Notes: generated by a model not told the origin, from the sequence alone. A DNA stretch of 64,000 bases from Trichosphaerium sp. ATCC 40318 (GCA_038496445.1 JALMLS010000371.1:9456-73455); one strand, 5' to 3'; numbered from the stretch's first letter, positions 4,946 to 63,999 are shown. Made by a program: numbers and translations.

Positions 4946-5010
4946 TTGGGTTTCACAAATGGAAGACGATAAAGCAAGCTCTGATGTATAATAGCGTTGT
5001 AACTTGTAAT

Positions 5011-6100: not shown

Positions 6101-6130
6101 TTTTGCTTCTACATAATTCAAATTGGTGTT

Positions 6131-22137: not shown

Positions 22138-22168
<31 letters not shown>

Positions 22169-22764
22169 GGCGTTGTAAATCATTTCGTTCTACTTACCAG
22201 GTTTGATGTCATGGTGTATTACATTAAAGGTATGTAGGTGTTTAAGTCCAAGCAGTACTTGTCGTACAACATTTGCGACAATGGGCCGTGTGAGCATGTC
22301 TTTGTAGTTTAGAATAATTTCCATCATATCAACTGTAGCACGTTCTAATACGAGCACTGGGTTTCCTACAAAGAAAAATTTAGAACACAAAAAAAATTCC
22401 TATCGTTGAAAAAATCACGTGTGATTTTATGATAAAAGATAAAAAAAATTCCTTTGTTGGGTTGAGAAAATATTAAACCCTTACCTTTTTGGAGAAAACA
22501 ACTGTGTAATCGAAGTATATTCTTGTGTTTAGCGAGCTGCATTACTTGAATTTCTCGTAAAACGAATTCAGCGTTATCAGCGCAAAAAGCCTTGGAAATG
22601 ACCTTAAGCGCCACCTTATCCTTTGATTTCTTGTCTTTAGCGGCAAGGACGTATGCTGTCCCTCCAGTACCAATCTTGCGGGTTACTTTATAGTCCCTGA
22701 GACTAGATTGTTTGTAGCTATTTTGCTTTGCAAGTACATGTTGTAGAAGTGTTGTAACGTCCAT
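21626..22764 (-). CDS. Ser/Thr protein kinase (non-RD), 3 exons
   Basis: GTGGTAYV, VALK, IHHDIKP/ENIL, DFG, GTKEYFPPE, DIWSLG. Confidence 0.92.
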
Positions 22765-23193
22765 GTTGTTTTAAGATAATGATGTGAATCACGCAAAATT
22801 ACTTGTTATCATCAAAAACTGCACGTCTTTCGAGAGCACTCGAGAATCTGTACTACTAGCGCTTGTAATACTATACGAGGCGTTTTTTTGAGAGCTTGGT
22901 ACCGACATTTATCACGCTACACGCTTTACTACCAAAAATTTAAATCACGTGTACCACCCGGATAATTAGTTTGCCACAACAAGGGAACCGCCGGCAGTAC
23001 TGTTTAGAAACGTAAAACCCAGCCAACAACCAAAACTTTAAAAAGGCGCCTGGAGGAAGAAGGAAAACTATATCGCTATCCGTTTAATGGAAATACGACC
23101 GATTTTAGGTGAAAAACCCACAAGAAGGCAGCTAGCGAATTTCGTTTATCTGAAAACTATTCATTCGCCTTTTGTTTAGGCTGTTGGGACAAT

Positions 23194-33172: not shown

Positions 33173-33832
33173 TTACTTGTACAGCATATTAATACCAAAC
33201 ATTGCAGCGCACTCCGTTGTAATGCCAATATGTGAACAATTGATCGATAGTGTTTTAAGAGATTTAAAGTACATCAAGGAGTCATCTGTTAAATCAAGAA
33301 TGGAACAATAAGATAGTTCAAGGTGTTCAAGGTTTACCAAATTCTTTAAACAAGCTTCTGTTATATTCTTGCTATGATTCAGTCTGAGGTGCTTGACATT
33401 AGACAAGGATTTTATGTGTTCATTGGATGTATTGCCAAGATGTACAAAGTATACATCCTTGAGTGCTTTTATACCTTCAGCTGTGATTTTCGAACAGTAA
33501 GCAATAGCAATTGAGTGTACAGTACTCAGTGTATTTAATGAAGCATCTGTTATTAGAGTACGTGTCACATTAATGGTATGAACACCTTTTAGTGCTTTAA
33601 TACCTTCATCAGTTACTTGACTACAACCACTGAGGTCAATGGCGTGAACGCCCTTAAGTGCTTTAATGCCTTCATCTGTTATTTGACTACAACCACTGAG
33701 GTCAATAGAATGAACACCTGCCAGGCAAGCCAAATCATTATCTGAGGATTCCTTATTGCATTTCATCACAGTGTTTTTAAGCAATGGGCTACCTTTTAGA
33801 GCAACACAATCTAATGGTTCTTTCATACGCAA
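33173..33832 (-). CDS. Intronless LRR protein (GVHxIDLSGC repeats), 5'-truncated paralog of 34127-35359, possibly a pseudogene
   Basis: Shares CxxLxxSPLLKN...DxDLAxLxGVH with the neighbour but lacks the F-box; has an internal 75-bp duplication. Confidence 0.75.
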   Translation of the reverse strand: MRMKEPLDCVALKGSPLLKNTVMKCNKESSDNDLACLAGVHSIDLSGCSQITDEGIKALKGVHAIDLSGCSQVTDEGIKALKGVHTINVTRTLITDASLNTLSTVHSIAIAYCSKITAEGIKALKDVYFVHLGNTSNEHIKSLSNVKHLRLNHSKNITEACLKNLVNLEHLELSYCSILDLTDDSLMYFKSLKTLSINCSHIGITTECAAMFGINMLYK

Positions 33833-34126
33833 ATAGACAAATCCAATATTAGTACGTATTGTTAAACATGCGAGAAACAGCAGAAGCTGTTATACGATCG
33901 TTTTTTTGTAAATAAAATAGAATGTGTGTTAATGTCTCTGGTGGAAGATGCTGTGGCGTTTTTTCATTTTTTGGCGATGTTTCGCAATGATTTGCCATAA
34001 TAACAGAGCTGGAAACTTTTTATGTGATTGACTTTCAGCGACTGGCTTGATCGCCTATTTTTTCATCTTTTGTCAATATTAGCGGCCTGGCCAGACCCCT
34101 TGTTACAATCGCGACAATTAGGCTTA

Positions 34127-35359
34127 ATGGCGAGCGTATACAAAGAAACCAAAATGTTTAAGCATTCCACAAGCGACTTGAACTATATTGAGCTTTTGGA
34201 TGTACCAACAGAGATACTGGCTCATTTACTTGCGTTTGTAGACCGTTCTTCTCGATTTCTTGTTTCTCAAAGCTGTAGACGTTTATCAGACATAATTCAC
34301 CATCACGTTGGATACGATGTTATCAAAGTTAACTCTACTGAAAGTTGTGCCCTTCTTTCAAAAAGTCCTCTCCTCAAAAACAGCAAAATAATATTTTGGA
34401 AGAAAGGAACTGACACAGATCTTGCTTTTCTTTCTGGTGTTCATGAAATAGGAATAATGTTAAACAAGAACATAACAGATGCAGGATTAAAGAGTATTTG
34501 TGGTGTACATAGTTTAGTATTGGCAAGATGTCCACAAATTACAGATGCAGGAGTAGTACCACTAGTGAAACATCTCAAACACATTGCTTTGAAGAGAAAC
34601 GCCAAAATGACAGCATCAGGTATCAAAGCACTAGCAGGTATACGAAGTGTCTATATTGCTCACTCAAATGTTACAGATGACATATTGTCCATGTTTTCTG
34701 GAGTACACAATATATCATTACAGGGATGTGCCCTGATAACATGCAAAGGTGTTTCAGCATTAGCTGGAGTACACACAATTGATTTAAGTGGAACTTTTGT
34801 CAACAATGAAAGTGTTTCATCATTGGCTGGTGTACATACCATACTATTGAGCAGAACATCTGTCACAGATGTATCAGTACTGGCTGGTGTACATACAATA
34901 TATTTAAGTGGAACACCAATCACAGATAAAGGTATTTCAGCGTTGGGCGGTGTACACACCATATATTTGAACAGAACATCTATCACAGACGTATCAGCAT
35001 TGGCTGGTGCACACATAATAAGTTTACGTAGTTGTCAACTCATCACAGACAAGAGCTTATCAAAACTAGTTGGTGTTCATACAATTAATTTATCACAATG
35101 TATGAGTATTACTGCGTCGTGTATGAAAAGTCTTGCTGGTGCACATACCATTGATTTGTCATCCACAAATGCAACAGATGATTGGCTTGTTCCTCTCAGT
35201 CGTGTAAAAAAAATACGATTGTATGAATGTCAGCAGATTACAGAGAAGGGTATTGAAGCGCTGTTAAGCGTCCGTGAAATAACTCTATCAAAAAGGTATA
35301 CTTCAAAAGAAACTATAAATACTCTAAAAGAAAAAGGCATAAATGTAAAAGCACTCTAA
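34127..35359 (+). CDS. Intronless F-box/LRR protein
   Basis: LLDVPTEILAHLLAFV F-box; ~12 LAGVHTIxLSxTxITD repeats. Confidence 0.9.
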   Translation: MASVYKETKMFKHSTSDLNYIELLDVPTEILAHLLAFVDRSSRFLVSQSCRRLSDIIHHHVGYDVIKVNSTESCALLSKSPLLKNSKIIFWKKGTDTDLAFLSGVHEIGIMLNKNITDAGLKSICGVHSLVLARCPQITDAGVVPLVKHLKHIALKRNAKMTASGIKALAGIRSVYIAHSNVTDDILSMFSGVHNISLQGCALITCKGVSALAGVHTIDLSGTFVNNESVSSLAGVHTILLSRTSVTDVSVLAGVHTIYLSGTPITDKGISALGGVHTIYLNRTSITDVSALAGAHIISLRSCQLITDKSLSKLVGVHTINLSQCMSITASCMKSLAGAHTIDLSSTNATDDWLVPLSRVKKIRLYECQQITEKGIEALLSVREITLSKRYTSKETINTLKEKGINVKAL

Positions 35360-43100: not shown

Positions 43101-43230
43101 CTAAATCACTTAATACCTTGCAACTTAACTGCGCATTTGTTCTTTTTTTTTCAAGTTTCTAGAAGGTTCTAAACGGAACATGCGATGAAAAAGCTTATCT
43201 TCCCAATAACTACTTAAAAACTAATCTCAC

Positions 43231-43917
43231 ATGCTGAGCCTACCAGTAGAGATGCGTTTCATGATATTTAGCGCTGATGAGTACGTTTTTAACATGTGGC
43301 CAATTTTGAGCAAGGAAACAGCATACACAAGTCGGTATAACGATAAGCTTGAGAAGCACGGTAAATTCAGACGTAAAGAGATTGTTTTTAACCAAATACG
43401 TAAAATTGAATGTTGGTACAGAGATGATAAGCTTGATGGCTTGTACTCTGAGTGGTATGCATGGGGTCAACTTTGCTCAGAAACTATGTACAAAAACGGA
43501 GTAAAACATGGCAGTAGCCACATATTTCATTCAAATGGCAATCTTCTTTCAGAGAGCTCATTCAAGGAAGGCAGACAACATGGTAAGCAGATGATATTTA
43601 ATGAGAGAGGAGATTTAAGAGAGGAACGTACTTTTGTTGAAGGTCGTATTGATGGCATGAGAAGAGAGTTGTTTGTTTGTAATCCAGGGACAATTGGGTC
43701 CAATACTCAGTTATGTGAAAGGAAGTGCTTTTACAAGATGGGCAAAAAAGAAGGGATGTGTGTCACACGTTTTGAGAAAGGAAACACGTTTGAAGAGTGT
43801 TTTTATTTGAATGGAAAGTTGCATGGTACATACAGGAAGTGGAATACTAATGGAGTATTGGAATATCACCTCGTATACAACGAAGGAGTTCTGGTTGAAA
43901 TAATAAAAAAAAAATAG
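43231..43917 (+). CDS. Intronless MORN-variant (MORN_2) repeat protein with an F-box-like N-terminus
   Basis: MLSLPVEMRFMIF; repeats YKNGVKHG, FKEGRQHG, YLNGKLHGTYRKWNTNG. Confidence 0.88.
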   Translation: MLSLPVEMRFMIFSADEYVFNMWPILSKETAYTSRYNDKLEKHGKFRRKEIVFNQIRKIECWYRDDKLDGLYSEWYAWGQLCSETMYKNGVKHGSSHIFHSNGNLLSESSFKEGRQHGKQMIFNERGDLREERTFVEGRIDGMRRELFVCNPGTIGSNTQLCERKCFYKMGKKEGMCVTRFEKGNTFEECFYLNGKLHGTYRKWNTNGVLEYHLVYNEGVLVEIIKKK

Positions 43918-43949: not shown

Positions 43950-46900
43950 TTATCTCAGGACGAAAAGTATTAATGTGGCCGTAATGAGTATATTCAATGT
44001 TACTTTTGACTTGTAGCAGAAACGTAGACAATAAAATCGAATACTTTGACAGCTTCCTTCTCGAATAGCATTGCTTTTGATATGGGGTTTAAACATTGAG
44101 AAAAAAAACAGATTTGGGTAAAAACAATCACACTTATTCCCGACACAACACAGGTTACCATGATCATCGATAAACGGATTAAGGATAATACTGTTTTTGA
44201 GCTTGTTTTTGTTCATCAGTGTGAGCATAAGTACATTGTATTAAACTTTATTAGCATTTGGGCCAATAGTAGCCCATAGCTCTTTGCATGCATTTTTGGA
44301 CGCTGAAGCAAGTAAAGATGTGTCTTCAACCTCCAAGCATATCGTATGTCCTTTTTGCTTTGTAAATACAGCAGCTCGGCTCCACAAATGCTATATAACT
44401 TATCATTAACAAACACAAAATACAAACAACTAAAAACGTGCCGTTGCTGTCCAGCCTTTATCAAGGAGGAACACTGTCAATGAATCCTTCATTGAAGCTT
44501 CCAAAGAAGTAACTTGAGTCATATCGCTACAAGCCCTGTAAATATCCATACAGGCATATTATTAAAAAAACACGTGCTCTGGGAGTGCTGATGCTAGCTC
44601 TTTCTTGGACGTTTCACCTAGAAGTGCAGGAAAAAAGATTTGTTTGTTGTTCTACAACACGTGTAAGAATGAAAGAGTAGTTATTTCTGTTGTTGTATAC
44701 CTCAATAGTTGGTGCTACACCTTGAACACATGCGCGTGGATTTACGATATATAAGACGCTGTGAAGTGCCAGTAAATTTGTAAAGTAAGACAAAATGCCA
44801 ATGTCAAAATTCTCTAAAATGTATGCAAGCTACAGTCAAAGTCAGCATACGTAAAAACAGGTACAGATAAATAGTAAAAAAAATTAGTACACGTGTTGTC
44901 AAGAACCCTTTGTTGAATGCTGTTGCTTTTGAAGTAATTAAAACTCCAACTACGTCCATAATAACGTTAGGGTCCAAAACCACATAATTCGCAACATTGG
45001 GTGCATCATAGTATCTCTTGGTGAACCATATTAGAAAAAAAACTTACGAAAATCCAACGAAAAGTTAGCTGTTCGTACAATGTATCCCATGTCACTTAAA
45101 TATTTTGTTATAGAAAATAACTCATTATCATCATCTATACCACCATATCCTTTTGCATATCTTCTCCATTCCTTGAAGGTGTTAAATGGATATGGAATGT
45201 TAGGGCTATATTTTTTTTTAACGTACTTGAAATTTTAGTATTTGAAAGTCACGTTTGAGACATGTTGCTAAGTATTGCATTCTCCAATGATTCATTCCTA
45301 TTTTTTTCACCAATCCCATCGTTTTTCGTAAAGGCAGTTCACTTGATACCTTGGATAATTGATTCGCAAGCTCTAAATTTATCAAGGGTTAACTCTCCAT
45401 GTTCCAACATTTTCTACAAAAAAAAATACCTGGAATGCCTTTGCCAGTCATATTAGACACGAAACAAACACCCATGAAAGGAAATGAATCAACGTTATAT
45501 CTTAAAACAAGTGCGCTATGTAGTTTACTAACATAGACCTTATTAGCAACATCTAGATGAGTTCCTGAAGGGCGTAAGACAAAACGTATAAACATTGAGA
45601 TTAAAAAGTTTTTTGGTACCAACAATGAATATTGGAATTGAGCCAGAAGTGTCTAGTACGGACTGTATCCAAAAGTCCAGCCGATTTAGATCGGCATTAC
45701 CTACATTGAAGCAAATGACAGCGGCACAATGTTCATGTGACAACATCATCTTATAAGCAAGGTGGTAAACGGTTTGACCTGTCGTCAGTCACAACTTGTT
45801 TAAGAAAAAAAAAAATCTTAATCATTTCCGCACCTGCAAAGTCCCACGTTATATGTTCAACTCTGTCCTCTTTTGGACCTTTTTGAGGTAGTTCTAGTAA
45901 TCCTGTATCGACCCCATATGTAGTTAGAATTAAAAGTGGTTGATACGAATGAGTGATCTGTTTACTGCTCAAAGAGTTTAAAGTTGTCGTCTTGCCAACA
46001 TTGTTGTCGCCCAAAAATACCAAACGTGACCGATTTCCAACTTCAGCCGTAGCGCATACTGAGCGACAATAGTTCAATAGCGCTTTATCAGATTGACTAG
46101 CAAGTGCACTTCGTATACCACGAGGAATTGGAAAAGGTAACAAGTCCAAAGGGCATTCTGTGACAGCGAGGTTTGAAAGAGTCGGATGGACGAATAGAGA
46201 CATTGGCAAGTCTTTCAAGTTCCTGTTGTAGCTTAAATTAATTGTTTCGAGTGCTGGAAGACATGAGAACATATCTGCTACAGTCGTAATATCGTTGTAG
46301 GAGGCATTCAGTGATTTTAATTGCGATAGATGTCTCAGAGATATCGGTAGTTCAATAAGCCCACACTCCCTCAATGTCAAGTGCGTTAAAGTGATCAGAG
46401 CTGATATTGCAGGGTAAGGTACATAAGTGAAAGTTGACTCTTCTATCACAAGCTCTTTAACACCACCGCCCTATAGTCCAAGTCAGTTCAGACTATAACC
46501 AACGGGACGAAAAAAAAAGATTGAACAAAATCAAACCCTAAGTGCCTACCTTGAGTGCTATGAGTACATTGTCTATTGCGTTTAATTCAATATCATGACG
46601 CTTTAATAAATGAGCCTTAGTCACTAACCCTCTCGCACACTAGTGATCGATTAATTTGGAAACAAAGTAACACGTGACTTTTTTCTCTTTTACCTTTATA
46701 ACCTGCCTATTTCCGCCTAGAACTTGCTTCAAGGTCCGTACTGCGAGTTGAGCTTTTGCTGTTTTTTTACTCATATACATAGACTCCTTCCTTGATCTAC
46801 TAGATGATAGAGATCCTGATACCATAATAACTGTTCCTTTTTTTGGATGAACTTCCTCTATAAGTACTTGTTGTAGCGTGAAATTCTTTCCAGATATATA

Positions 46901-47283
46901 CTCCGCAAAGGCAAGTAATGAAGGAGGTTTAATATCATTCCTTGATAAGTCTATAAGTTTTAATCTTTTGTTAAACGCCAAGCACTCTGAACCAAGCGTC
47001 ATTAGTAGTTTTGGACCTAATCCATACGAAGGCAAGTGTAGCTCCTTTATAAAGTTATCTTCGCCTAATTTCTTGAAAAACAGAATAACATCATCAACGT
47101 TTACGCCACCACTACTTTTTTTAAGTAAAACAGTCGCTGGTGGTTTTAATTCGATTGATAGGCTTCGTTCCGCTTTAAACTTCTTTAACCATCTAGGCCT
47201 ATAATAATAGCGTAAAATACTGTATTTTATCACGTGTTACGAACGGACAAAACTAACCATTTCGGTTTTTCTACTTTTTCCAT
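43950..47283 (-). CDS. Roco protein (LRR-Roc-COR) without kinase, multi-exon; 3' end approximate
   Basis: RI-type and typical LRRs; LVFLGDNNVGKTT, TTYGVD, TWDFAGQ, IFIVGTHLD; COR-like YLSDMGYI...VVLDPNVI. Confidence 0.85.
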
Positions 47284-48859
47284 CGTTTCTTCGTCTATAC
47301 ACTCCAGACGCTAATGACGCTCGATATAATACCCTGAGAACGCGCGGATATCCAAAAAAGATACCGCTAACCACCTGAACTGTAAAGTGAACAAGAAAGA
47401 CGTTCGGTTACAGTTTTGGTGTATTCGTTTGTTGTAACCAGTTTAGTCATCGCTTTAAGTCACAGTTTATTTGCACGTGTTCTAAAACACGCTCACAACC
47501 GAATTCCAGCATTTTAGATCTCTACATACCAACACATTCGCTTATAACCTAATTTGTAACAAAGCCACTTATCGACGAGGCCGAAGGCGCTTTATGCTTT
47601 AAAACCTTTGTGTATCACTCCACTCCCGAGACTTGTAACGCATAAAACTTTATGCTCTTATCATCACTTTACTCTAATGTACTGTTCGTCTTTACGATTA
47701 AGACAAAGTTGTATTCTACAAGTCATGTTTTCTATTTGTACCAAGCAAAGGCTAAGTGGTTTTTTTATTTGTGTATACATTTCGTATTACATACTCTTCG
47801 CTTTGATATGTTTACATTACGATAGCTTGATTGTGTGTACACTGGACAGATTAAATCCAATTATATGTTGAATTTGGCATGGTAAGTTTAATGGCATTAC
47901 ACTTGCAAGACTGTTCGTACCTCCATTAATCGCAAGTTACTCAAAAATATATATGAAACCTAACAATTCTACAAGATTCTTTACAACTCATACTTACGCA
48001 ACCACGCAAAGGTTGTTACTTCACTTTACACTCTCAATTTTATGTGCTGGTTCTGTATGCGAAACAAAGCCAAGATAACTTTAGACCATTGTTTTATTAG
48101 GCATTAAGCTTTGTAAGAAACCATGCAAAACAATAAAAAAGGAATACTGATGCATTCTTTTTTGCTAAATGAAAGAAAAAAAAAAGGAAAACTTGTGAAA
48201 TGTTAATTAATAGAAGAAAAAGGATTTTATTAATTACAACAACCCCCTTGTGTGAACCAGCGAAACCCTATGTATAGAATAGAAAGTAAGTTATTAAAGG
48301 ACACTACATATGTACCGTTCTGCAAGCCATCATCCCTTATCACCCAAAGCCAATCTGTGAATCCTACCTAATGATTACATCTACTGCACCCATCCTGTGC
48401 ATCCACATCCCATTGTACCTAACCTATTGTGAGTTACACCTACTGCGCCTGTAATCTGTTCCTTTGTCATCTCAACACGTGTTAAACTCGGTCAACCAGT
48501 GAAAACTGACCCAGCTGGCATGTGCTAAGAGGATGAAGAACAGACTACAGTACAGATACCACCACAGTCGTATAATGAGCAGTAGGTGTAACAATCCCAA
48601 TACCCCCATCCTGTGAATCCTGCCTAACGCACCATCCTATGAATCTATACCCACCTTGTACCTACCTATTGTAAGCCAAGTTGCGAAGGTAGAACAGTTA
48701 GTCAATACACTTTTAAACATCCAATAAACACGTACTTATGCTAAGCCACCACTTGCACCCAAATCTGTATCCCTTTGCCAACATCTCTTAGCCAACCTGC
48801 ACAGAAGTTACCATCAATTACACCACAACTTACCCTCATGTTTATAGTTAATGCCAATA

Positions 48860-49570
48860 ATAGAACCACCTGACATATACATCTGCTCATAAGATGAGCA
48901 CCTAAAACTGCATATCCCTGGATCAATTGGCTATACACACCTTCATCATTAGTGTGTATAGCGCAGTTAGTTAGCAAATGAACTTGTACCTCCTCATTGA
49001 ACACCTCATCTTGTGCTAGTACCTAAGTTAGCACCTATTGCACCACAACCTACCCATATGTAGTTAGCGCCAATAATAGAACCACCTGACATCTACATCT
49101 GCTCATAAGATGAGCACCTAAAACTGCATAACCCTGGATCAATTGGCTATACACACCTTCATCAATAGTGTGTATAGCGCAGTTAAGTTAGCAAATGAAC
49201 TAACTCCGACATCTTGTGTGCTAGTACCTAAAACTGCATATCCCTGGATCAATTGGCTATACACACCTTCATCATTAGTGTGTATAGCGCAGTTAGTTAG
49301 CAAATGAACTTGCACCTCCTCATTGAACTCCGACATCTTGTGTGCTAGTACCTAAAACTGCATTCCCTGGATCAATTGGCTATACACACCTTCATCAGTA
49401 GTGTGTATAGCGCAGCTAAGTTAGCAAATGAACTAACTCCGACATCTTGTGTGCTAGTACCTAAAACTGCATTCCCTGGATCAATTGGCTATACACACCT
49501 TCATCATTAGTGTGTATAGCGCAGTTAGTTAGCAAATGAACTTGTACCTCCTCATAGAACTCCTACATCT
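48860..49570. repeat. Five-copy repeat (core ~110-124 bp), each with the stem gctatacacac-11nt-gtgtgtatagc
   Basis: cctaaaactgca starts at 48901, 49117, 49227, 49351, 49460; long and short variants alternate. Confidence 0.95.
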
Positions 49571-50183
49571 TGTATTTGACCTAAACGTCAGTCAGCAGGC
49601 TGTACCTTTGTCCAAGTGCGATCCTCCCATCCTTTAAGTGCGCTACTATGGTATAAAATAAAGGTTAGTCATACATCCACAAGGGCTTCACTACATACCT
49701 TTTGTAATGCCCAACCATTTCCGTCTTGTTTTGCTAGATGAGTTAGAAGGTGTACCACTACCTAAACGTACTTGGGTTGACTGCCTTTTCCTTTAATCTG
49801 CCATTGCCATTCAGACCATCCACATCTATTACCCACCCAAGTAATAGAACTTGTCTTTCCTTTAGGTGTTACCTAGATGTGTTACACAGCGTATGAATTA
49901 CCTTTCCTCTCAAGTACTTGGCTGGTCCCTTTCCTTGTCGAGGTTGAAGTTGTAACACTTGCATGCTCATGTTGATGTACTTGGCTTGAGTGCCTTTCCG
50001 TCAATTGAGTCAATGCATCACATCTGTTCCCACCCAAGTACTAGAACTTGTCTTTCCTTTAGGTGTTCCCTAGATGTGTCATACAGTTGCTTGAATTACT
50101 TAGTTGGAATCATTGATTCCCTTCATCCACCCAGGCATGTTACATTTGTACATGCTTAGGACTGTAATGATGTGTTACAATAT

Positions 50184-50879
50184 CTCGATTAGTATTTCTA
50201 CACCTCCTTGATGGGAAGTGTTATAATACTAGAAGAGATAATAACTTTCATACACAGGTAGTTTAGTTGTTGCCCACTGAGGACTTCAATACATACCTTG
50301 TGTAAATGCTTACCTGGCTTAGCACCCGATTAGCATTTCTACACCTCCTTGAAGAAGTGTTATAATGCTAGAAGAAGTGATGCAAGTTAGCGCCACGCTG
50401 TGTATTAGCTCTAGAACTCGATTAACATTTCTACACCTGCTGTAGGTGTTATAATGTTAGAAGAGAACAAAGGTCAGTTATACGTTCATATGGTTTGTTG
50501 TAGCCCATTAAGGACTTTAACACATACCTTGTGTAATGTTAACCATGTGACTTGCACATTGGTGTAACATTGCTCAGAACTCGATTAGCATTTCTACACT
50601 TTTCCTTTTTTGGATGTGTGTTATAATGCTAGAAGAGAACAAGAGCATTGGTGCTTTCAAATGTTGCCTACTAAGGGCATCACTCTTGACACATTGGAGT
50701 CTTTCCTCCCATAAGTACTTGGACAAGTGCCGTTCCTTGTGGGTAAAAGTTGTAGCACCCCTACATCATAAAAGATGTTGAGGCAACTGATGACATGTAC
50801 TTGTTAGGGTACTATGTCTGTAACCCAGAACTCGATTAACATTTCTACACCTGCGGTGGGTGTTATAATGATAGAAGAG
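50184..50879 (+). ncRNA. Array of five conserved stem-loops (CTCGAT-TAGCATT-TCT-ACAC-loop-GTGT-TAT-AATGCTA-GAAGAG); candidate structured RNA or ssDNA element
   Basis: Copies at 50184, 50325, 50417, 50580, 50831 with compensatory stem substitutions; transcription not shown. Confidence 0.45.
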
Positions 50880-51866
50880 AACAGTTACAACACAACCAAA
50901 TATTTGGTTGTGGTAAAGTGTGTAGAGTACAGTGTGCTCATCCCCACCAAGGTACTTAAGACATGTCTTGTTCCCAAGGAGGCTAAATGCATTGAATGTA
51001 GTCTCTGCAGGTTGATGGTCCTGCAACGTCAAATATGAACCATTTATTCACCATACTGCAGTATGCAGCTGTGGTGTACAGAACAGAAGTATTTGACAAT
51101 GCATGATGTAGTTACATCATCACATCTTTCAAGCTGCAGATCGATTAACACTGCCTATGCTATGTTTTTTACGCATTTTTCATAGGGGTTACGTGATAGA
51201 AGACCTGACAAGGGGTAAGAGAAGCGACTTCTAGGGCACATCACACAAAAATTCTTTGTACCTGCCTTTTTTGGCAGAATTTTAGTTTTTTTGGATTGGT
51301 GCCTCAAAGTACTTTCTTCTTTTATGCTATATTAGGCTACACGGTTGTAAGACTGGAGGTCTATAGCGAAAATATTCAGTTTTCAAGGCACCTAGAACAC
51401 TGTTGTAACAATCGTAGCTATCTACATACCCGTTGTGTACTGAGGTTGTCGGTTTGAAAAAAAAACCTCCAACACGATTATTGGTTTGTTGTTTCTGTGC
51501 TTTGGGCTGCTTTTTCGTTGTTGAAAGTGCACGAATAACTACTCGTTGGACCTAATACGCTCTTGAAAGACCCGTCACAGTATTTTATTGCGTCCACGCG
51601 TATTGAATATAAATAGAAATAGTATCAAAAATCCAACCGTTTTTTTTTACCAAAACTGCCTTTATTTATCTGTATCGCGTTTATAACCGCTAAGGCGTTG
51701 TTTTCCGAGACCTATTCGGCGTTTTCAGCGTTCCCCTCCACGACGAATTTCCATGACCTTCGAAAGAAAAAAAAATCCACAGATCCAATCTCGTTTCTTT
51801 TTTTGGAAATGGTTTTTTTATTGTTTAAACACAAACAAGCTGGCTAAAGTTGAGAGAATCTTGGGT

Positions 51867-54800
51867 TTAGTGAGGCTCAGAATGAGCAGCATTTAGTTGC
51901 TTTGCAAACGATTTTCCTCTGTATCCTCTTATAATGGTCCTACCATTCGCATTTCCACCGGTGTATCTGTACTGTATACCTGTTCCGTCCTTGTTTAACA
52001 GAACATAACGAACTCCATCTCCTGTAGGTATCTTCTCCCCAAAGCGCTTATTCTGGTATCCATTCTCAAGAATAGTAGTAGATTTCGCTGCATAAGGTTG
52101 GTAAGAACCGTTATCTTCAAGCCAAAACCATGAACCACGTGCTACGACAAAAAATAAGCAAAAGACTTCAAAAACCATTTCCTCGTTTTTTAAATAGAAA
52201 GTGTTTTTTACCTATTTGTCTTGTGAACCCTGTACTCTTCCTCTGTTGTGTCATTGTCTTTAAATTTGCAGTATAACGTCCTCCAACAACCTATGTGAGA
52301 TTATTAAGAAGAAATTATACTTACAAAACGTACAGTGATAACTACTTTGCCTTCTTTGTATCCATCTTCCAACTAAGAAAAAATCAGTTACGACGAAAAA
52401 AAAGTTAACGAAGTTGTACCGCTTTGTTGTCAGCTGGTCCATACTCATTCCATTGGGAGTCATCCTTGTAGAACCAATGAGGTTCAGGAACGTTAATACC
52501 TCCTTGAGAAGCGGAACCTTCTTCTTCATCATCGTATTCCTCAGCGTTAAGGAACTCAATTTTAAAAGCTATTCTGTCCTTATGGATAGCATAACGATTG
52601 ACGTGCTGCATAATGAGCGCTTCGTAGCTACCAGTAGCAGCAAAGTACTGTAACGCAAGAGTAGAATCCAAAGGATCGTCAACGTCTGGGTTAAGAAGCA
52701 ATCCATAAACACAATTCAACACGGTAGTCATAGCAGTGTCGGCTGTCCAATTTCTATGAAAAAAAGTTAGATAAAAAAACGAGCGAATTTGCTTACCTTG
52801 TGAAAATAGAGTGACATATTTTACCTAAAAGTAGGAGGTTAGAGTAATCGCTCGTGTATATATTATCGCACCGTATTGGTTGACGTTACAATGACGTATT
52901 GGTGTAATGAACCTCATTTCAGGAGCAGACATTGGGTAGTCTTCAGGGAACTGACAGTACAACAAGTACGTTCCATTCTTATATGGTGATGCCTCTGGCG
53001 CTTCCATAATAACTCTCCAGAAACCAATATCCTCTTGACAAGGATATATATCGAAAGCAGGATGCTTCGCTAAAACAACACGTCAAAACATGATCCAAAA
53101 ACTGCAAAGCAAAAAAAAAAAAAAAGTGTTTTCTTGTTCTTACCTTTCATGAGTTTTGTCAACTCCTTCATTAATCGACGAATACGATTAGTCTCTACTG
53201 GCGCATCTTTCTCGGAAGCATTCTTTAAAGTAGTCTCAAGAGTTTGAACTGGTTTTTTCAAGTTCGTAGGTTGCTTCCTTGCAGGAACACGTGTGTCACT
53301 GCACTCATCGAGAGGGAATCTCCAGTTATTTCCGAATTTTAGTAAATCTCCTCTATTAGATACAAAATTCTTGATTGCCTCCTAAATAACAAGTGTAAGG
53401 CTTTCAGAAAAGGCAGTAAAATGAAAAAATTACCTGATCTGGTCTCTCATATGAAGTCAATAGAGTTTCAAGCTCATTCAACCTAAGAGCTTGTTTTAAG
53501 TTCTCAGGAGCAAAAGCGTAACCGTTACTCGCTTTAGCTATTGCACGCAACTATAAAATTCTGTAAGCTCTTTTATTTTGAAGTGGAAGGCAAACTGAAA
53601 TGTGGAGAAAAAAAAGTCAAAACAATTTGCGTACCTTGACGTTTTTAGCGCCTTCACCAATCATAATCGCATCCAAAGTAATACGGTTGACCTAAGCAAT
53701 AGCATGTCAATCAAGAAATTTACAGCTAAAAGTGTACCTGTAAGTATTGCGCAACCTTCCATGGAATAGATGAAGACTTTGTGTCTTCACCATCAGTAAG
53801 ACACATAACACGTAACCTAGCGTTCTTGTGCTTTTTCTTATATGCAACAAGCTCTTCTCCAGCTTTTTGAATAGCATCCCAAAGCTTGGTTTCACCCTCA
53901 GCATCAGCGGAATCAACTTGATCTCTGAATATTTCGTATCTATTCGGCGAAGGAAAAAAGTCAACAAACATCTTTTGCGATGTAATTTGGTTGGGAAAAA
54001 AAAAAGTGTAATTGCACGTACAGAGGTGTTAATTTACACGAGTAATCAACATCATTTCCAAAAAGAATTAATCCAATATGATTAGGGTAATCATAAGCTT
54101 GAGACCTGTTGATGAAGGCATGGAACAGTTGTTTTACAGTCTCCATACGTGTCAAGCGCGCCTCGTTCCTAAAAAATTAAATCAGCCCGCAAACCAGACA
54201 ACCTGTTGTCTAGTACTCATCGTGTGGTGCTTTCATCTCAATTACACCACCAAGAGGGTATCTACTGATTTTTTGGTTGTCATGGAAGAGAGTACCAGTG
54301 TACCATCCATCTCCAATTTTTCTAAGTAAGGGTAAGTTCAAGTGCATGTAGGCACTGTGTACCTCATATTGGTCCATAGTGAAAACGATTTTGGTTGGAT
54401 GAGACCGAGTTTGTGCCAAATTAGTAACTTCAATTCGTATGTCTTAAAAACAACTAGAGTTAGCTTAACAACCACACTAAGTCACGTACGGTTAAGCTTG
54501 TTGATACTGTGACATCAAACATTGTACCATGCATGCTCTTAATCTTGAGTTTCTTTTTGGATTGGCTGAAGCCACCAAAGCTCATGAGATGGTGAATGGT
54601 TGCGTTCCTTGAGATATTATAATCCGTCAATACATTTTCGTCAATCATTTGACGACCAGCGTATATTAAACGCATAGGCATATTAGGCATTGAGCTCATT
54701 TTTTTGTTTACCAAAGATTTCAGCTACGCGTTCTTTAGTATTTCTCATTTATTTTGAGATTGGCTACGTACCTGTGCAACTGTCCAACTCAAATCTACTT

Positions 54801-57732
54801 CAACAGTTATTGTTTTACCTGTTAGGGTTCTTATGAAGATTTGAATAGGATTTTCTGGTACAAGATCTTCTCCAGCGTCTTCTTGTTCTTCCTCTTCATC
54901 TACAAAACGAATAAGCTACACGTTATTTGTGACGTGATGATACTTACCATCTTCTTGAAGGAATTTAATAGTTTTGGTTGGATCTTCTTTAATTATCTCT
55001 AACACACGCGTTCTATATGTTTTAACCAAGTGTGCAAGGAAAACAGAGCGAGAAGCGATTTCGCTTAATATTTTGCTAGAACTCCACTAATACGAACGTA
55101 AGCAACCCTATCACAATGTAACAAAGGGTAACGTACTTGGCGTTTAGCTATTATTCTCCAATGGTCAATGTATTCATGGCTTCTAAGACGAGCAATCTCA
55201 GTCTCGATCTCATCCTTAGCAAACGTTATACCAGAATCAACTTCATCTTGATCCCAAGCTTTTCCGTTCATTGAAGAGCTGATATCAAGGCACACAAGAA
55301 TAGCTTCCTTTACTTCACGGTCATCAATAAATTCCATATCATCAACATTAGAGTTCGTTAGCTTCTAAAGAAACCAGCTTAACAAGATTCAAAAAAAACT
55401 AGCGATATCATACCTTGGCGATCATATTAGCATTTGCGCCAGTGCTGTCTCCAGTCTCAGGATCGAAAAGAAGGATTGTACCAACACTGCACGGCTCAGG
55501 GCCAGTGTAGACCTGAAAAAAACTGTTAATGTAAAAAGCTCGAGACCTGTCTACTCACGTTCACATAGCCTTCCTTGTTTCGTGACAAACAAGGTGGCCT
55601 CGCACGTTTAAGTGATAGAGGAGGTATTATACGCATGGTTGTGACCTCTTTGTTTACACGACGCTGTAATTTTCCCCAATCGTACTGAAGACCGGTAGGA
55701 ATGTCTTCGTCCATGTCATCTTTATCATCGCCCTCTTTTTCCTCTGAATTAAAGCATAAGTCAGGTTATGATTCAGTTAATCAAAAAACAGATTCCATAC
55801 CAACTTCAGGAGGAGATAAAACAAAAATATCATCGCCAAGAGGATGGCATAGTAGTAATGTGCAGTAGTATGTGTCAGGAATAAGATCTTCTTTCGCGAG
55901 TTTGGAATAAGGAGACCTGAAAAAAATCGTCAGAAAAAAAAAGGGTATCGAAAAAAAATTACTAACCCGCTTATGAACATGCTACCACCTTCCATACGTT
56001 CTAGTAAACTTGGTCTATTGTACAACTTGTTTTTAGTTGATTCCTTAATTCGGACAGGATCTGTCATTCTGGCGTAGGTTATGCTATCAGCAAGAGACAC
56101 TAGTACCCAAATTTCAGCAAGGAAAAAAATTATACTCCACTTTTACCTTGCGTAAATTTACTGCATCTCTTCTTGTCATTTGACTCAGCGTAAGTGTCAA
56201 AGAAACCCCAAAGTGTAGCACTTCTTTCAAAGAGTTTTTCATCAGAAACTAAATGCGAGTGTAAGTAGAAACATAAAAAAGAGAAAGGAAGGAACTAACA
56301 AATAGGAACTAGAATTGAAAATAGAGTAAAAAACAAAAATAGAAACGAAGCCACGTGCTCTTGGATGGAACTAATTTTCTTGCAAAATTATAAAAAGCAG
56401 AAGCAAGGGCAGCCTTTTGCTCAGCGTATAGCTTTTTCTTTTGGATGAGATACCTAGGAAATAGACGTTAAAACAAACGGAAAAAGTAGCAACTTTTTTT
56501 TTTTATATTCACTTACTTTAAGGCAAGGATGGCTGGAGGGAACTGAATTCTCCTAGCAAAGTGGCCCAAAAACGATTTTGCACCATCAAGATGAGCTGTA
56601 AGTACATAGAGAGAAGATAGGAAACAAATCATTCCAGATTTTGATTGCTCAACAAGAGCTGGTTGCCAAGCTACATCAGCTTGGAATCTATGACCTTGAG
56701 GAGTTTGTACATGTCTGAAATTATCCGCGCTCTCGCCAGTGTATCTAAAACGAAGTATAAGCCCAAAACAAGTAAGCTTGTGGTCTTTTTACCGTACCTT
56801 CGGAAAGATACAAAAAGTATACTTGGGTCATCCCAAGGAGCAGCTGGGTTTAATTCTTCCTTGCTTTGAAGCAAACGCGCAAATCCGAACTGACCCAAAG
56901 TCATCTGTTCAGTTTTATCGGTTACAAGTATAGGATGTGCAGCGAGGTGCAAGTCAACAACTAAATCAGTTCCCTTTCGTAAAAAAGTGAGTACAAAAAA
57001 AGACTACTGTTCGCGTGTACTTCGAATCTAGCCTGTTCAGCTGTTTGGATTGCATCTTTCAGAGCTCGTAGTGTATGGCCCAAGGTTACAGTTATCTCTT
57101 GGACAGTCTCATGGTATGAACAACGATATTTGATGGTAATGGGTTCGTTGGATGGCTGGGAAGCAAGAATTTGCAATTCTGTGAAAAGGTTAATGATAAA
57201 TTGCTCCAATGGTGATGTTGTAATGTTGTTTGTACCTGGTTCTAGTTCGGGCGCGTTTGGGTCAACTTCACATGAGGTCTGTTCCTCTTTTTTAGGCTCT
57301 GCGGTTGCGCCTGGTGTGATTAGTTTCCGTTTTGACGTAACAGAAATGTAAGTTGGTTTGTTTTATTTGTACCTTCGTCGAAAACTGCTACAACCTCGTC
57401 AGCCTCCATAATAGCGTCTTCCAAGATATCTTCGTTGAAAAGAAAGGCGTCATCAGCTTTTAACTTCAGTTCTGTAATTTTCACGTTTAATCCGGCGTCT
57501 GTAGCAAGTCTACGCGCCACGTAAACGGTTGAGTTCAAAGAAATTTTTGCTTTTTTTTTGGTTACTGACAGCGTTCACGTACTTTTGAATGGAGGTCTCC
57601 AAATCTCCAATGGTTGACTCAGGAGACAAATCACACGAAAATTTTGACGACCCAACCTAGAAAAGTTACAAACTTGTATTTACACGCGTATTTCAATACC
57701 TCGACTGTGTAAGTAGTTGTTGTGTTGGCCAT
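51867..57732 (-). CDS. Giant Ubl / vWA (split by Ubl insert) / E2 UBC / WWE-WWE protein, multi-exon
   Basis: IQIFIRTLTGKTITVEV...RLIYAGRQM (Ubl); VCLDISSSM and CLTDGED (vWA MIDAS); SPYKNGTY...FPEDYPMSAPEMRFITPIRHCNVN...KICHSIF (UBC); WFYKDDSQWNEY and WFWLEDNGSYQPY (WWE). Confidence 0.88.
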
Positions 57733-57902
57733 GGTATTCTGCGTGCCGTTTAGACAGATTTACGCTTGGAAACCAACTTAAACATAGCTCTTAAGGCATT
57801 AACGCACGTAAACAATGAACAGCTATTTGCTAGAGCGACCACAAGAAGGTTGAATTCAATTGTACGTCAAATCGCGCAACATAAACAAAACCAGCCTGTC
57901 AA
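57733..57902. promoter_or_regulatory. Putative bidirectional promoter (~170 bp between divergent ATGs)
   Basis: ATG at 57732 (-) and 57903 (+), each followed by a short exon and a GT donor; promoter function inferred. Confidence 0.55.
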
Positions 57903-60900
57903 ATGACAGAAGCTTCTAACGGTACGCTTGTTAACAATACCACCGCCTATAACGTTCAAACGGCACGTTAAATGAGTTGGTGTCGGCCAAACTACAAATG
58001 GCGTTTCGACGAGAATCATATCCTATCTAGAGACTTACCACAGCACTTTAGGTGACCCGTTGGAGTACAAGATTGTTTGCGTAGGCCAAACATTTTTAAA
58101 AACGTCATTGGTCAGCTCTTTCGTAACGGAGACGCAACAAGTACAGGTCAGCCGCGTCGTTTCGTTTCAAAACAAAAATATTATTTCGGCGCTTTTTTTC
58201 AAAAAAACTAACTTGACGAGCAGTATGACCCTATAATAGAAGAAAACTATACCAAATCTATAAAAGTAGATGATAAACTTTGTAATTTGATAATAACGGA
58301 CACAGCCGAACAGGTATGAACCAAGTTTTTTAGTGTAAAACAAGAAAAGTTATTTTTGGAACAACCCTTTTTTTCTTTTTTTATGTTCAGCTAATTCTGA
58401 CTTTTCTTTCATTTCAGGATGAATTCTCGTACGTCTGAGTATCTTTTATATCTTTAATATGAAAGATTATGATATATTTCTTACTCACAGCGAAAGGTCA
58501 ATGCGAGAAATGTGGTTTAAGAACGGTGAAGGTTTTATTTTTTTCTACAATGTGAGGTCAAGGACAAGCCTTGAAGGACTTAAGTTTCAGTTGAACATGA
58601 TGTTTAATTGTAAAGACAGTAGGGATATACCAGTTGTACGTTATAACGCTTACGTGACCTACAAGTGTTTTTATTTCTCTTGAACAACACGCCGTAAAAA
58701 CCCGATATTTTATTAATTTAATTAGACTCTTTCGTTGATTTTTACGTAGGTCATTGTCGGTTGCTGTTACTCTCGTAGTGAAGTAGGCGACAGAGAAGTA
58801 TCAAAGCAAGAAGGTAAAGCATTTGCTGCAGGTGTTTGCGATAGAGGTATTCCGTATTTTGAGGCTGACGGCGACACTTGGGTACTTTTTTCTTTCGAAT
58901 ATTATTCATTTTGTTCACTTCTTTTGATCTTTAGACTAATGTGGAAGAACCTTTCGAGGCTATTGTCAAACAAATAAACTCTATAAGAAGTCAACCAACG
59001 ATAAAGAAGATAGAGAACCCAAAACTACGGTTAAAGATATCAAAGAGAAATCTTCTGAGGATGGAAATCACAGACAAAGCTCAGAAACAAGGGCTGAAGC
59101 GTCTTCCAAAACCACTGATTCCTTACGAAAACAGCGTGGCTCATCGTATTTTGAAGCACTTGCGAGGACGTACGTGTGACCTTCCAAAATATCGTTGCGA
59201 ACTGACAATTGTTTTCTGTAGCGTTGGCGGAAGAAACGTCGTTGCCGCCAAAGGTCAACGAAAAGATAATGACAGATGCTATGGCTCAGGTGTTTGTATT
59301 CACAGACAAGCCTACCAAGATTGCTGACCTGTGTTATCATGCTGAGAGCGAGTTCAAGAGCCTTAGGTTTCCATTCGGAAACAATAACAATCGGCCTCAG
59401 AGTCATGTTCGTGTTATAAATTTGAACTCTGGAACAGCAAAGTTTCAATATTCTAAAGCTGATGTTGTCATTCTTCATATATCATCTGTAGAGTATCAGT
59501 GGGTATATGGTTATGTACAACATACGTTTTCATCGTCCTCTCCAATATTTATTATGCTACGGGAACCTAATAGCAAGATTCCTATTTTACAAGGTAAGCC
59601 AAAAGATATTTTTCAGTTCTGAAGCCCATTCTTTATTTAGAGATATCTATGGCGCGTTGGTTGTCTGGCCATATTATCGATTGGCCTAATAAGTCAATAA
59701 AGTCTGTGAGAACTCAGATAATAGGCGTTATTCTGTATGAATCCAATTTGAAGCACGAGGCAGACTTCCTTGATTATTACAGAAATTGGGTTGAATCTAA
59801 ACCGAAATTATATCCTCCATTGACTACAACAAGGCATCATACGCTCAAATTACTTGGTACTACACTTCTAGATGTTTTTTTTTAAGTCTACAGTGATAAA
59901 TGGCTGACATGAATCATTTTAGTTCTTGGTCATGGCGGTTGCGGTAAAACCTCACTCATCAACTTTTTGAAAAAAAAAAAGAATACAATTACACAGTCTA
60001 CTATTGGTTTTGATAGTAGTTTTCTAAGGTAAACGTTGTTTTGACTTTTTGATGAACTAAATCTGTTCTTTGCCTGTCTGCATGTTCGGTTAGATTAATG
60101 GTTTGTTGTAGCATACGATCCAATAAATTCACTGTTTATGACTTTGCTGGACAGCTTGAGTATTTATCTGTCCATAAGCACTTTATATCCGCAGAGTACT
60201 CAATCTACATCATAGTGGTACGCATAGAAACTCTAGCATCTATTGTCACGTGCTTGATCAAGAGTGGATCGCATTTTTATCCAAAATCTGTTTTGTTCAT
60301 CATTTTCTCTCTTCGCCAACTCATGGTATTCTTAGTTCGATTCATCACAACAATTTGAGGTTGCTATGAAACAAATTAAGCATTGGCTTGCTTTACTACG
60401 TGGTAAACTACCTAGCACAACACTCAATGCTATTTTTTTTGTTGGAACAAAGATAGACGAAGTCAATAATCGTAATACAATCGATACCCTCCGCACTGAT
60501 CTAAAAGCATTCTTGAGTCAGGAAACAGAATTTACAAACCATACAATTTCGTTCGTCTCTTCAATAACTGGTACTGCGCTTCACCTTTTGGTAACGTCCT
60601 TGATTAACATGCTGTAGGTGAGGGAGTTACACAAATGAAGGGACACATAGCTGAAGTGTATAAAAGTATGAAGCCATTTCCGAAGGTATGTAAAAATGTT
60701 ATTTTTTTGGAATGGAAAAAACTGAAAATCACTCACTCCTCAACTAGGTTGCAAATTTATGTCAAGTCATTGCAGATACTGCTTCACAAGGAAATCATTG
60801 TAGAGTATTTACGAGTGTGTACGTGTTTGGCAAGACCGGTTGTAGTTCGCCTCAGCGTCTTGTTGTTTTGATTGCTTTTCTAAGTTCTCTTTTTAGCTCC

Positions 60901-63900
60901 GACTTTAAAGACATCTGCAAGAAAGAGTTCAAAAAGAGCCATACTGATTGGAACAGGTTAACTAAACTTGAGTTTGCGACATACCTTGAGTACTTGCATA
61001 ACACTGGAGTGCTAATGCTAGATACTGTACGGATTAACTGTTTTGTTTTTGGTTCATCCCTCCTTCTCATTTTTTTGGTTTTAGACGACTGCTATAATTT
61101 GTACAAAGCCAGCTATCATGTCTAAAATCTTGAGCAGTTTTATTGGACCTGATACACATATCAATCGACTTCAGGAGCAGAAAGGAGGCTGTGGTGGTAT
61201 GAGGAATCCAATAGTATCTTTAGAGGATGCTGTAAAACGTTTGCAACGTGTTCCTACTACTGATGGAGAACCATACAGCCGGCTCATTTGCTTATCGATT
61301 CTCAACTTTATGGAGCAGCTCAAGATCTGTTATATGCTGTCACCGCAAGAGGAGGTACGCTTGAAGTGATAAGAGTGGAATCGTGTACTTATTGATCGAT
61401 AGATATGTTACGGAAGACCTGGATACATGTTTCCAATGCTCCGACCAAAAGCTGAAATGGCCTATCTACCTCCTGTAGTAGGTGATCGTGAGGGGTTACG
61501 TCTTTGGACGGCTAGACTTAAGTCCAGCGAAGATGTTAGTATTACCAGCGATTTTTTTAACTCGATGCAAGTTGAACTGAGAGGTAAGCAAAAGGATTGA
61601 AAGCGTTTTTTGCAGAGATTTACTTTTTTTCCTCGCAGATTTTCACGACTTCAAGTACAAGCTTTTCTTGAACTCTATGGTCCTCGCAGATAAACAAGGT
61701 AATATGGTGTTATTATACCACTCAGTAGATTCCATCATTATGATGGTGCGGGGTACTGATCCAACAACTTGGGTACTTCCTATTTTTCTCATTTTCGTAC
61801 TCTTTTTTATTGTTCTTTTTTATTCTTAACTTTGGTTTTGTTTTAGCTTTCTACGCTATATGCATTTATTCCTCAATTGAAGAGAGCATCTTTTGATGTA
61901 CTTTGTCCTTCGTGTACGGTATCAGGGACGTTCCAGTCATTCGATAGAAGCCATGTTTGTAAATCTTCTACAACAACGCTTACAGAACAGACTGTTGATC
62001 AAGGTGTTCCTATTGAAACTCTTGAAGGAGTTGTACCTAAATTATGGAGTCCAAAAGGAGGTATTACATTGTTTTCTTTTCAAACAGACTGTAGTTTAAG
62101 TCATTAATGTCATTTCAATTAAGGCGTCTCTTTCTTTGAAAAAGGAGTATGGCAACAACAGCCTCAGTTGAAGTATACTGTTCTAGAGCAGTGTGAAGCT
62201 ATAAAAGAGAGAAAAAGCGAGTACCTACGTGCTCGAGATATGTTCTACCAGTTTGTTGGTGTTGACAATGCATCATTCTTTAAGCTTGATAAGGTTGTGT
62301 TCTTTCACAATCCTATGCTTGAAAATAAGTTTCATGCTTTTTATCAACGTGTTATATCACGTGTTGTTGACCAACATGATCCAAATGATATTGAGGATTC
62401 GACAGATGATGGTATGTACTAGCTAACAAGGTGTGACGATGCTAAGCAAAGTTTAGGTGCAAAGAAGGCTTGGAAACAATGGTTCTTAGACAACTTTCTA
62501 ACAACGCCATATTCAAATTTTTTTTATTTAGGATACTTGAAAAGTTAGATAGTTACGCTATGCGTGGGTCTGGGAATGAACAAGTGAATTTATTGCCAGG
62601 GTGCGTACCTTTTTCGGTCTTTTTGACTTTTTTTCTTAGTTTTTTCTTTGTGTAGGTTTCATGGCACCACAGAGGTATTTTTACGCATATTCTAAGTCTA
62701 AGAAGGCTTTACTAATAAAGAGGTTATAGGAATCATCGTTTAAAATCGCTGAGAATAATTTTTTGGAGCCTCGAGAGCTCAATAATCAGACAGATCCTGG
62801 TTATTTTGGTACTTATTAATTGGCAGAATGTCAAACATGTCACTGATAGTCTTTGGTAGGTAAAGGCATATACTTTACGCAATCGCCAACGTATGGTATG
62901 GTTATATTCTTTCAAGTTATTCTAAGCCCTAAATCACGTGTAGGATCCAAATACGCTGAACTAAAGCAAAAGACAGGTCAACACTGTCTCCTCATATCTG
63001 TACGACGACTTTTATCGAAAAACAAAAAAAGACACCCTCCCTCCCTTTCTTAGCTAATGCTGTTCTTTAGTGGTTGATTATGGGTAAACCGTATCCTGTC
63101 ATTGAGACACCGGATCCTAATGATCCAAATACGTTACTTGGAAAGCCATGCAAGGCTGGCTATGACTCTCATTATGTTGTTGTTAAAAAGGCTGGTAATG
63201 ATATGATGTATATGCCATGTCGTCCTGCTGAAGAACCTGACGCAGATGAAGTTGTAGTATTCAACAAAGACCAAGTAAGAAATAGTTAAACGCACACCTT
63301 CTTGGAATTAATGGCTATTTAGATACTGCCGCGATACTTGGTGTACTACACTAGGAGTGGCACCAATACGTTTGATACATTCGAACTTAGCTGGCGAGAT
63401 TGTAGAAACTTGGTTTTGTGGGTACGTACAGCAAGAAGAGATGGTCTTGATCGAATACTGGCCACACTTTTTGCCACGACTTTGTGTTGAACTGCTTTTT
63501 TAGGTGGATGATAATCTAGCTGATGAGAATAAGTTCACTGTAAAAATGTTGGAGAAGGATCCTAAAGCGAGTGTCAAGGTGAGCCCTGATATGAACATAA
63601 GTTGATTAGTAATGTATTTGTATGTAGGTCATACCCATGACGTCAATCACGGAATTGATAGCATTTTTGAAGCAGTATGCTGCCAGTAATATTAAAAAAA
63701 TAAAGGTCATTACAAATCAGTACAGAGCGAATGATGGAAAGCAAGATGCTGCCAATAATCTTGTCAAGTACGTTTACCCATCAATTTTTATATGCGTTCT
63801 TGATTCAAAAAAAGCGCACAAAGAGCTGGTTGCTTATTTTCCGTTTTTTAGAGTTGTCAGGGAGAAAAAGAAGTGGAAGAAAATTCCAATATTGATATAC

Positions 63901-63999
63901 GGCAACAATGTTGACAGCGCTGGTTTTCTTGTCAAGAAATATTCAAAGGTTAAGGCCACTACTAAAGCAGTTGACTTGCTTCACTTTTGTTCAAAGTAA
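57903..63999 (+). CDS. Pseudo-Ras + Roc-COR + PARP-like ADP-ribosyltransferase + receiver-like domain protein, multi-exon
   Basis: EYKIVCVG, YDPIIEENY, DTAEQ (Ras-like); VLGHGGCGKTS, STIGFD, YDFAGQLEY, VGTKID (Roc); FHGTTE, DPGYFGKGIYFT, GYDSHY, DEVVVFNKDQILPRYLVYY (ART); LVLWVDD (REC); TAA at 63997-63999. Confidence 0.85.

Follow-up and report, generated by a model that had tools for sequence, protein, structure and literature searches.

Introduction

In animals, ADP-ribosylation is known to communicate with ubiquitination by way of ubiquitin ligases (E3s) bearing WWE, macro or DTC domains. In vertebrates, PARP9 and DTX3L are neighbouring genes that diverge from one bidirectional promoter, and their products connect the two modifications in immunity (PMC11251020, PMC4070648). 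WWE domains of the RNF146 type read iso-ADP-ribose, a unit of polymers only; others have a weak affinity for ADP-ribose (PMC11269756). In the clade 6 homologues of PARP6/8 from fungi, moss and green algae, the PARP domain is fused to a UBCc domain (PMC2964712, PMC4245714). The locus described here occupies positions 51867-63999 of a 64,000-nucleotide stretch of DNA from the amoeba Trichosphaerium sp. ATCC 40318 (hereafter the window, whose numbering is used throughout). It holds two large genes, which I call A and B: the first ends in a ubiquitin-conjugating enzyme (E2) core and two WWE domains, and the second places a PARP-type ADP-ribosyltransferase behind the Roc-COR module of Roco proteins.

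An earlier note on this DNA had proposed that genes A and B form a dedicated, co-regulated unit, and had cited the bidirectional promoter of PARP9 and DTX3L as a precedent, correctly as the literature goes. The analysis reported here leans, with limited confidence, towards a different reading: genes A and B are both real, each a multidomain gene with its own regulation, and happen to have a short divergent 5' region in common. Their E2-WWE and Roco-PARP-receiver architectures are new variants within the known ADP-ribose-ubiquitin and Roco systems; the pairing is unproven.

Results

Genes A and B are transcribed and spliced

The DNA of the locus is eukaryotic and intron-dense, with about 38% G+C. 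Its introns measure 41-130 nucleotides and follow the consensus GTA[AC]G ... CTNAC ... YAG; their sizes match those of the published assembly, which has a mean intron of 75 base pairs (bp) and 27,369 gene models (PMC10521059). Gene models were obtained by splice-aware prediction and then curated by hand against RNA contigs and homologues. In the curated models, the coding region of gene A (51867..57732, minus strand, like all gene A features below) consists of 29 exons encoding 1,439 residues, from an ATG at 57732 to a TAA at 51867-51869, and that of gene B (57903..63999, plus strand, like all gene B features below) consists of 31 exons encoding 1,363 residues, from an ATG at 57903 to a stop codon at 63997-63999. 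All introns of both genes are of the GT-AG type, those of gene A being 41-86 nucleotides long. The two start codons are separated by a shared 5' region of 170 bp (57733..57902), as the earlier note had estimated. No paralogues were found within the 64-kb window.

Transcription of the two genes was assessed on RNA contigs. A 727-nucleotide contig from run X3 begins at 57734, removes the intron 57657-57699 and reaches exon 3 of gene A; it backs the first two introns of this gene and the start of its third exon. On the other side, a contig from run X5 begins at 57838 and removes the gene B introns 57922-58051 and 58147-58223, and a second X5 contig removes intron 61027-61084. Because these contigs are spliced, both genes are transcribed and spliced. 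The outermost transcript ends (57734 for gene A and 57838 for gene B) leave at most 103 bp from which no transcript was seen.

Direct RNA coverage is limited to exons 1-3 of gene A and to four exons of gene B, and the model leaves the exon 4-exon 5 junction of gene A ambiguous. One may ask whether the models are artefactual: gene A could in fact be a pair of genes, or either A or B could be a pseudogene, with an E2-WWE part that is separate or not made. I give this very little credence. The reading frames are unbroken across 29 and 31 exons joined by canonical short introns, and gene B matches its relatives along its whole length (see below). Furthermore, runs X1 and X2 contain 0.28 and 0.23, respectively, of the sampled words of 52000-61999, yet neither has a contig on 57500-63499; their words from the locus must therefore derive from gene A, and the X1 share is, by my own estimate, near what a complete gene A transcript would yield. 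Both genes are real and, as far as their sequences tell, look catalytically intact.

Gene A joins an E2 core to two WWE domains

The Pfam scores given here for the genes of the window are those of single exons, not of spliced whole domains. The UBC core of gene A (52573..53189) matches UQ_con at 1e-16 on one exon and at 1.3e-3 on the next, and its nearest solved structures are those of Ubc13/UBE2N (1.4e-13) and UBE2D. The catalytic Cys is present (YGKICHSIF; the GKICHS segment lies at 52808-52872), and the HPN motif reads HCN (52879-52896), with a Cys in the place of Pro between the retained His and Asn. The HCN variant is common to gene A and to P0001, a spliced protein of 100 residues that was the sole relative returned by a word-indexed protein search with the E2/WWE exon, a search that misses long proteins. 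P0001 also backs the two small introns within the E2 domain of gene A. The E2-WWE exon has no relatives in the two metagenome scans and the one viral scan that were run.

Downstream of the core lie WWE domain 1 (52137..52482), which is spread over four exons and whose first 20 residues match Pfam WWE (4.7e-3), the remainder being read from the spliced model, and WWE domain 2 (51921..52136), which is contained in a single exon and matches at 5.1e-5 (24 bits for a cut-off of 21.1). The E2 core and tandem WWE domains that the earlier note had placed at the end of gene A are therefore there. In WWE domains, conserved Tyr, Gln and Arg positions contact the adenine and the phosphates of the ligand (PMC11269756). 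Compared by eye, without a tool alignment to a solved WWE domain and hence as a lead only, these positions are kept in both domains of gene A, in GGRYTA, TQQRK and TRQIAR for the first and in VRYVL, GIQYR and GRTIIR for the second.

A possible objection is that the WWE domains of gene A serve another ligand or a protein contact, in which case the protein would be a ubiquitin-pathway scaffold foreign to PARP chemistry. Human WWE domains do vary widely in ligand and affinity, those of DTX1 and DTX2 being very weak binders (PMC11269756). A sequence search of the WWE region against solved structures gave only a chance WRKY match, leaving WWE domain 2 with no sequence match among them, and the WWE domain 2 exon gave no candidates in the protein search, which misses long proteins. 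The Pfam match above the cut-off and the apparent retention of the Tyr, Gln and Arg positions in both domains speak for the opposite, and I regard this alternative as quite improbable. A single-sequence AlphaFold model of WWE domain 2 was also made and was rejected (predicted local distance difference test, pLDDT, of 42).

Gene A most likely encodes a ubiquitin-conjugating enzyme of the E2/E3-hybrid type. Its tandem WWE domains would bring the enzyme to ADP-ribosylated proteins, probably poly- or oligo-ADP-ribosylated ones, and its own UBC core would then pass ubiquitin to these proteins, which amounts to the logic of RNF146 implemented on an E2 instead of a RING. I infer both steps, ADP-ribose binding by the WWE domains from their sequence, and ubiquitin transfer independent of an E3. 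The vWA and ubiquitin-like parts of the protein, described below, may serve as a scaffold.

Gene B is a Roco protein with a PARP-type domain and a pseudo-receiver

The Roc GTPase domain of gene B (59844..60625) keeps the G1, G3 and G4 motifs intact (GHGGCGKT, DFAGQ and TKID) and matches Pfam Roc at 4.1e-4 on one exon; the homologue P0014 matches the same profile at 1.5e-12 and also matches the LRRK2 Roc structures. Evidence for the COR region (60626..61760) is weaker than for Roc: Pfam COR-A reaches 0.18 on one exon, sequence conservation here extends to P0027 and P0014, and another family member, P0004, matches COR-B at 6e-4. Between COR and the PARP domain, the short Cys-Pro-x-Cys motif LCPSC (61901-61915) is kept in P0027 and P0014 and may be a metal or redox site.

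The PARP-type ADP-ribosyltransferase domain, together with a conserved lead-in, extends over 62171..63349 and was delineated with a family profile, A2. It contains an H-Y-E triad, with the His at 62657-62668, the Tyr at 62808-62876 and the Glu at 63239-63262. No single exon of gene B in the window reaches significance against Pfam PARP; the homologues of gene B score from 1e-12 to 6e-14, and profile A2, which includes the window's exons, matches PARP4 at 1.3e-8, PARP2 at 5e-6 and PARP12 at 7e-4. In this comparison, the FHGT, GKGIYF and DEVVVF segments of gene B share columns with HGS, GIYF and DEFVVY of PARP4. The domain types named in the earlier note (WWE, E2, PARP, Roc and COR) are present, on weaker evidence in the case of COR.

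Gene B does not terminate with the PARP domain. Its last 125 residues (63407..63996) form a further domain for which the AlphaFold model of the family, with P0014 as first sequence, predicts a receiver-type fold (pLDDT of 88.9), and Foldseek retrieves receiver domains with this model at template-modelling (TM) scores of 0.6-0.7. The phospho-accepting Asp expected after strand 3 was not found; the position is occupied by the Asn of a conserved VITN. Because the fold is that of a receiver but the Asp position reads Asn, the C-terminal domain is, on the evidence of the model, a CheY-like pseudo-receiver. The earlier note was thus right in placing a PARP-type domain behind Roc-COR, and the end of the protein, which it had assigned to that domain, is instead the receiver-fold domain. 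The motif at the Asp site, VITN(R/Q)xRxxDG, is conserved in gene B and its relatives.

The exon that immediately precedes the PARP core of gene B was used as a query in an all-library protein search, which yielded 24 proteins, the window's own protein not being among them. Several of these carry Pfam PARP, Roc or COR-B. P0027 and P0014 can be aligned with gene B over its full length (tblastn, 4e-137 and 6.5e-108), and the alignment takes in the region from Roc to the C-terminus. Gene B is therefore a member of a conserved, multi-copy family whose proteins carry Roc, COR, PARP and pseudo-receiver domains in that order; other members are P0014, P0027, P0005, P0006, P0026, P0018 and P0019. A viral scan with P0014 found nothing. 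I infer that GTP gates the output of these proteins, in other words that a GTP switch would control the H-Y-E ADP-ribosyltransferase.

No paper was found on an E2 fused to WWE domains or on a Roco protein with a PARP output in a literature search that was thin on subscription journals. Within that literature, neither the fusion of an E2 with WWE domains nor the Roco-PARP-receiver family appears to have been described; the earlier note had likewise known of no description of the pairing.

Do genes A and B work as a pair?

The model put forward in the earlier note is that genes A and B constitute a dedicated, co-regulated writer-reader module that perhaps does without a separate E3 and is perhaps involved in cell-autonomous defence. 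Several features of the locus are consistent with it. The genes are head to head, with 170 bp between their ATGs and at most 103 bp between their transcript ends; the H-Y-E triad of gene B and the E2 and WWE motifs of gene A are intact; both genes are present in run X5; and there are precedents for an association of this kind in the bidirectional promoter of PARP9-DTX3L and in the fusion of PARP6/8 homologues to UBCc. Finally, the specific adjacency is improbable by chance, a point to which I return below.

The linkage and expression data point the other way. Four relatives of gene B are available with flanking DNA, L002 (14.5 kb), L003 (19 kb), L004 (8 kb) and L005 (5.9 kb). The flanks of all four lack a called E2 or WWE gene, and a tblastn search of them with the modelled gene A as query was likewise negative, although linkage in relatives was what the earlier note's proposal called for. 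As regards expression, gene A has a depth of 18.7 in X3 and gene B essentially zero; RNA from gene B is found only in X5, at a depth of 2-9, X5 being the only run with both genes, and no contig from the small transcriptomes X1 and X2 falls on gene B. At the level of contigs, a weak test, the co-expression expected of a divergent pair is not seen across X1, X2, X3 and X5, and tight co-expression of genes A and B is argued against, weakly.

The chemistry of the two proteins may not match either. The solved PARP nearest to gene B is PARP4, which is a mono-ADP-ribosyltransferase according to its entries in the Protein Data Bank (PDB), so that a PARP4-like writer may be ill-suited to a WWE domain that reads polymers. 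The H-Y-E triad permits chain formation; it does not prove it. All in all, the model of the earlier note appears doubtful. Its full form, in which gene B is a dedicated GTP-gated writer whose mark is read by the WWE pair of gene A, ubiquitin is attached by the E2 core without an E3, and the whole is an independent, linked defence module of the amoeba, is more doubtful still.

Several considerations weigh against the preferred reading, that of separately regulated genes brought together by chance. That a PARP gene should lie beside some ubiquitin-system gene is expected by chance. For a PARP gene to lie beside a non-PARP WWE gene, by contrast, a rough estimate gives a chance of about 1-2% genome-wide, assuming about 70 PARP genes and about 3 non-PARP WWE genes among 27,369 gene models (PMC10521059); such low odds favour a real link. 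The transcript ends are merely about 100 bp apart, which makes some shared regulation likely. In addition, the relatives that were checked are only about 30% identical to gene B and may be paralogues, and L004 may be an RNA contig. Lastly, the expression runs are assembled contigs, in which zero contigs on a region can be a false negative. Because the tests of linkage and of expression are weak, the pairing idea is weakened by them, not refuted. Gene B is probably not the dedicated writer of gene A, the adjacency of the two genes would be lineage-specific or incidental, and the two proteins may act in a common, general form of ADP-ribose-ubiquitin signalling.

Inspection of the flanks of the relatives brought to light other neighbours. 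In L002 (10201-11706) and in L005 (3060-4484), the Roco-PARP gene is directly followed, in the same orientation, by a gene with Pfam DG1062_N; DG1062_N is a conserved neighbour in these two relatives, unlike the E2-WWE gene. In L002, two open reading frames (2472-6906), one with ankyrin repeats and the other with Roc, immediately precede the PARP frame, again on the same strand, and this relative may be a single ankyrin-Roc-COR-PARP gene that was called in pieces.

Other domains of genes A and B, and the rest of the window

The description of gene A as a protein with an E2-WWE end, correct in itself, is to be completed by several domains in its N-terminal and central parts. The N-terminus carries a beta-grasp domain of the PB1/ubiquitin-like type (57309..57711; Pfam Par3_HAL_N_term, 1.5e-4, 22.4 bits for a cut-off of 21). 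Residues 82-575 have no match, whether by Pfam on eight exons or in the protein atlas. Further on, two sub-threshold vWA matches follow each other in the correct order. The first (55137..55307; Pfam VWA_CoxE, 0.073) includes DISSS, a DxSxS metal-site motif read from the sequence, and the second (53506..54149; Pfam VWA_2, 0.16) corresponds to the C-terminal end of the profile. Between them lie ubiquitin-like domain 1 (54571..54846; Pfam ubiquitin, 2.4e-9 and 2.2e-5 on two exons) and ubiquitin-like domain 2 (54231..54552), the latter recognized by eye from its sequence pattern and devoid of a Pfam match. Gene A would thus contain a probable vWA domain interrupted by two ubiquitin-like domains. 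Ubiquitin-like domain 1 terminates in ...LMSFGG, which resembles the Gly-Gly end of ubiquitin.

In gene B, a degenerate Ras/Rap-like domain (58066..58979) precedes Roc. It shows GQTFLKTS and DTAEQ, with CCYS replacing NKxD, and one of its exons, of 48 residues, matches Rap1A at 2.9e-4.

Elsewhere in the window, repeats occur just past the 3' end of gene A (48700-51100), where the same frame of about 30 residues is found twice near 48744-49351. Coding segments with leucine-rich and MORN repeats are found at 45754-47236, 33176-35356 and 43225-43914, and protein-kinase-like frames at 21629-22770.

Discussion

The present value of this locus lies in the two architectures and not in their pairing. 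An E2 endowed with its own ADP-ribose readers would shorten the route from the mark to ubiquitin, and a Roco GTPase with a PARP output in place of a kinase extends the known range of outputs of this switch family. Should it prove true that the two genes cooperate, they would be the second independent, genomically linked ADP-ribose-ubiquitin unit after PARP9-DTX3L.

Regarding gene A, one parallel in overall design is offered by the very large E2/E3 hybrids UBE2O and BIRC6, which combine a UBC core with substrate-binding domains and act without a separate E3. Gene A is similarly large and joins its UBC core to putative substrate-binding domains; UBE2O and BIRC6 are devoid of WWE domains, and neither is known as an ADP-ribose reader. 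With RNF146 (Iduna), the partner of tankyrase, gene A shares the presence in one polypeptide of a WWE domain, a reader of ADP-ribose chains in RNF146 and a putative one in gene A, and of a ubiquitin-transfer domain (PMC11269756). RNF146, however, is a RING E3 of small size and depends on an E2 supplied by another protein, whereas gene A carries the E2 within a chain of 1,439 residues that also comprises the vWA and ubiquitin-like domains. The Deltex proteins DTX1, DTX2 and DTX4 resemble gene A in linking a tandem of WWE domains with a ubiquitin enzyme (PMC11269756, PMC10810221); their WWE domains occupy the N-terminus and are associated with a RING plus a DTC domain, whereas those of gene A are C-terminal and follow the UBC core.

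As for the locus as a whole, it resembles PARP9-DTX3L in that a PARP-family gene and a ubiquitin-system gene are arranged head to head. The components are different: DTX3L is a RING-DTC E3 with no WWE domain and PARP9 is a macrodomain PARP, while the amoeba locus has an E2 bearing WWE domains as the partner of a PARP of the Roco type. Moreover, PARP9 and DTX3L heterodimerize, and interferon induces both together, in contrast to the amoeba locus, for which neither co-induction nor conserved linkage was found. The clade 6 PARP6/8-UBCc proteins offer another instance of an evolutionary link between PARP and E2 catalytic domains. Theirs is a fusion within a single protein that contains neither WWE nor Roc-COR, whereas two divergent genes are present here, and the PARP domain of gene B resembles those of PARP4 and PARP2, not PARP6/8. 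Finally, gene B is built like the Roco proteins, namely LRRK2, the Roco kinases of Dictyostelium and the bacterial Roco proteins, with Roc followed by COR and with the Roc domain of LRRK2 as nearest solved structure (PMC6337361); it departs from them in its output, which is a PARP-type transferase followed by a pseudo-receiver and not a kinase.

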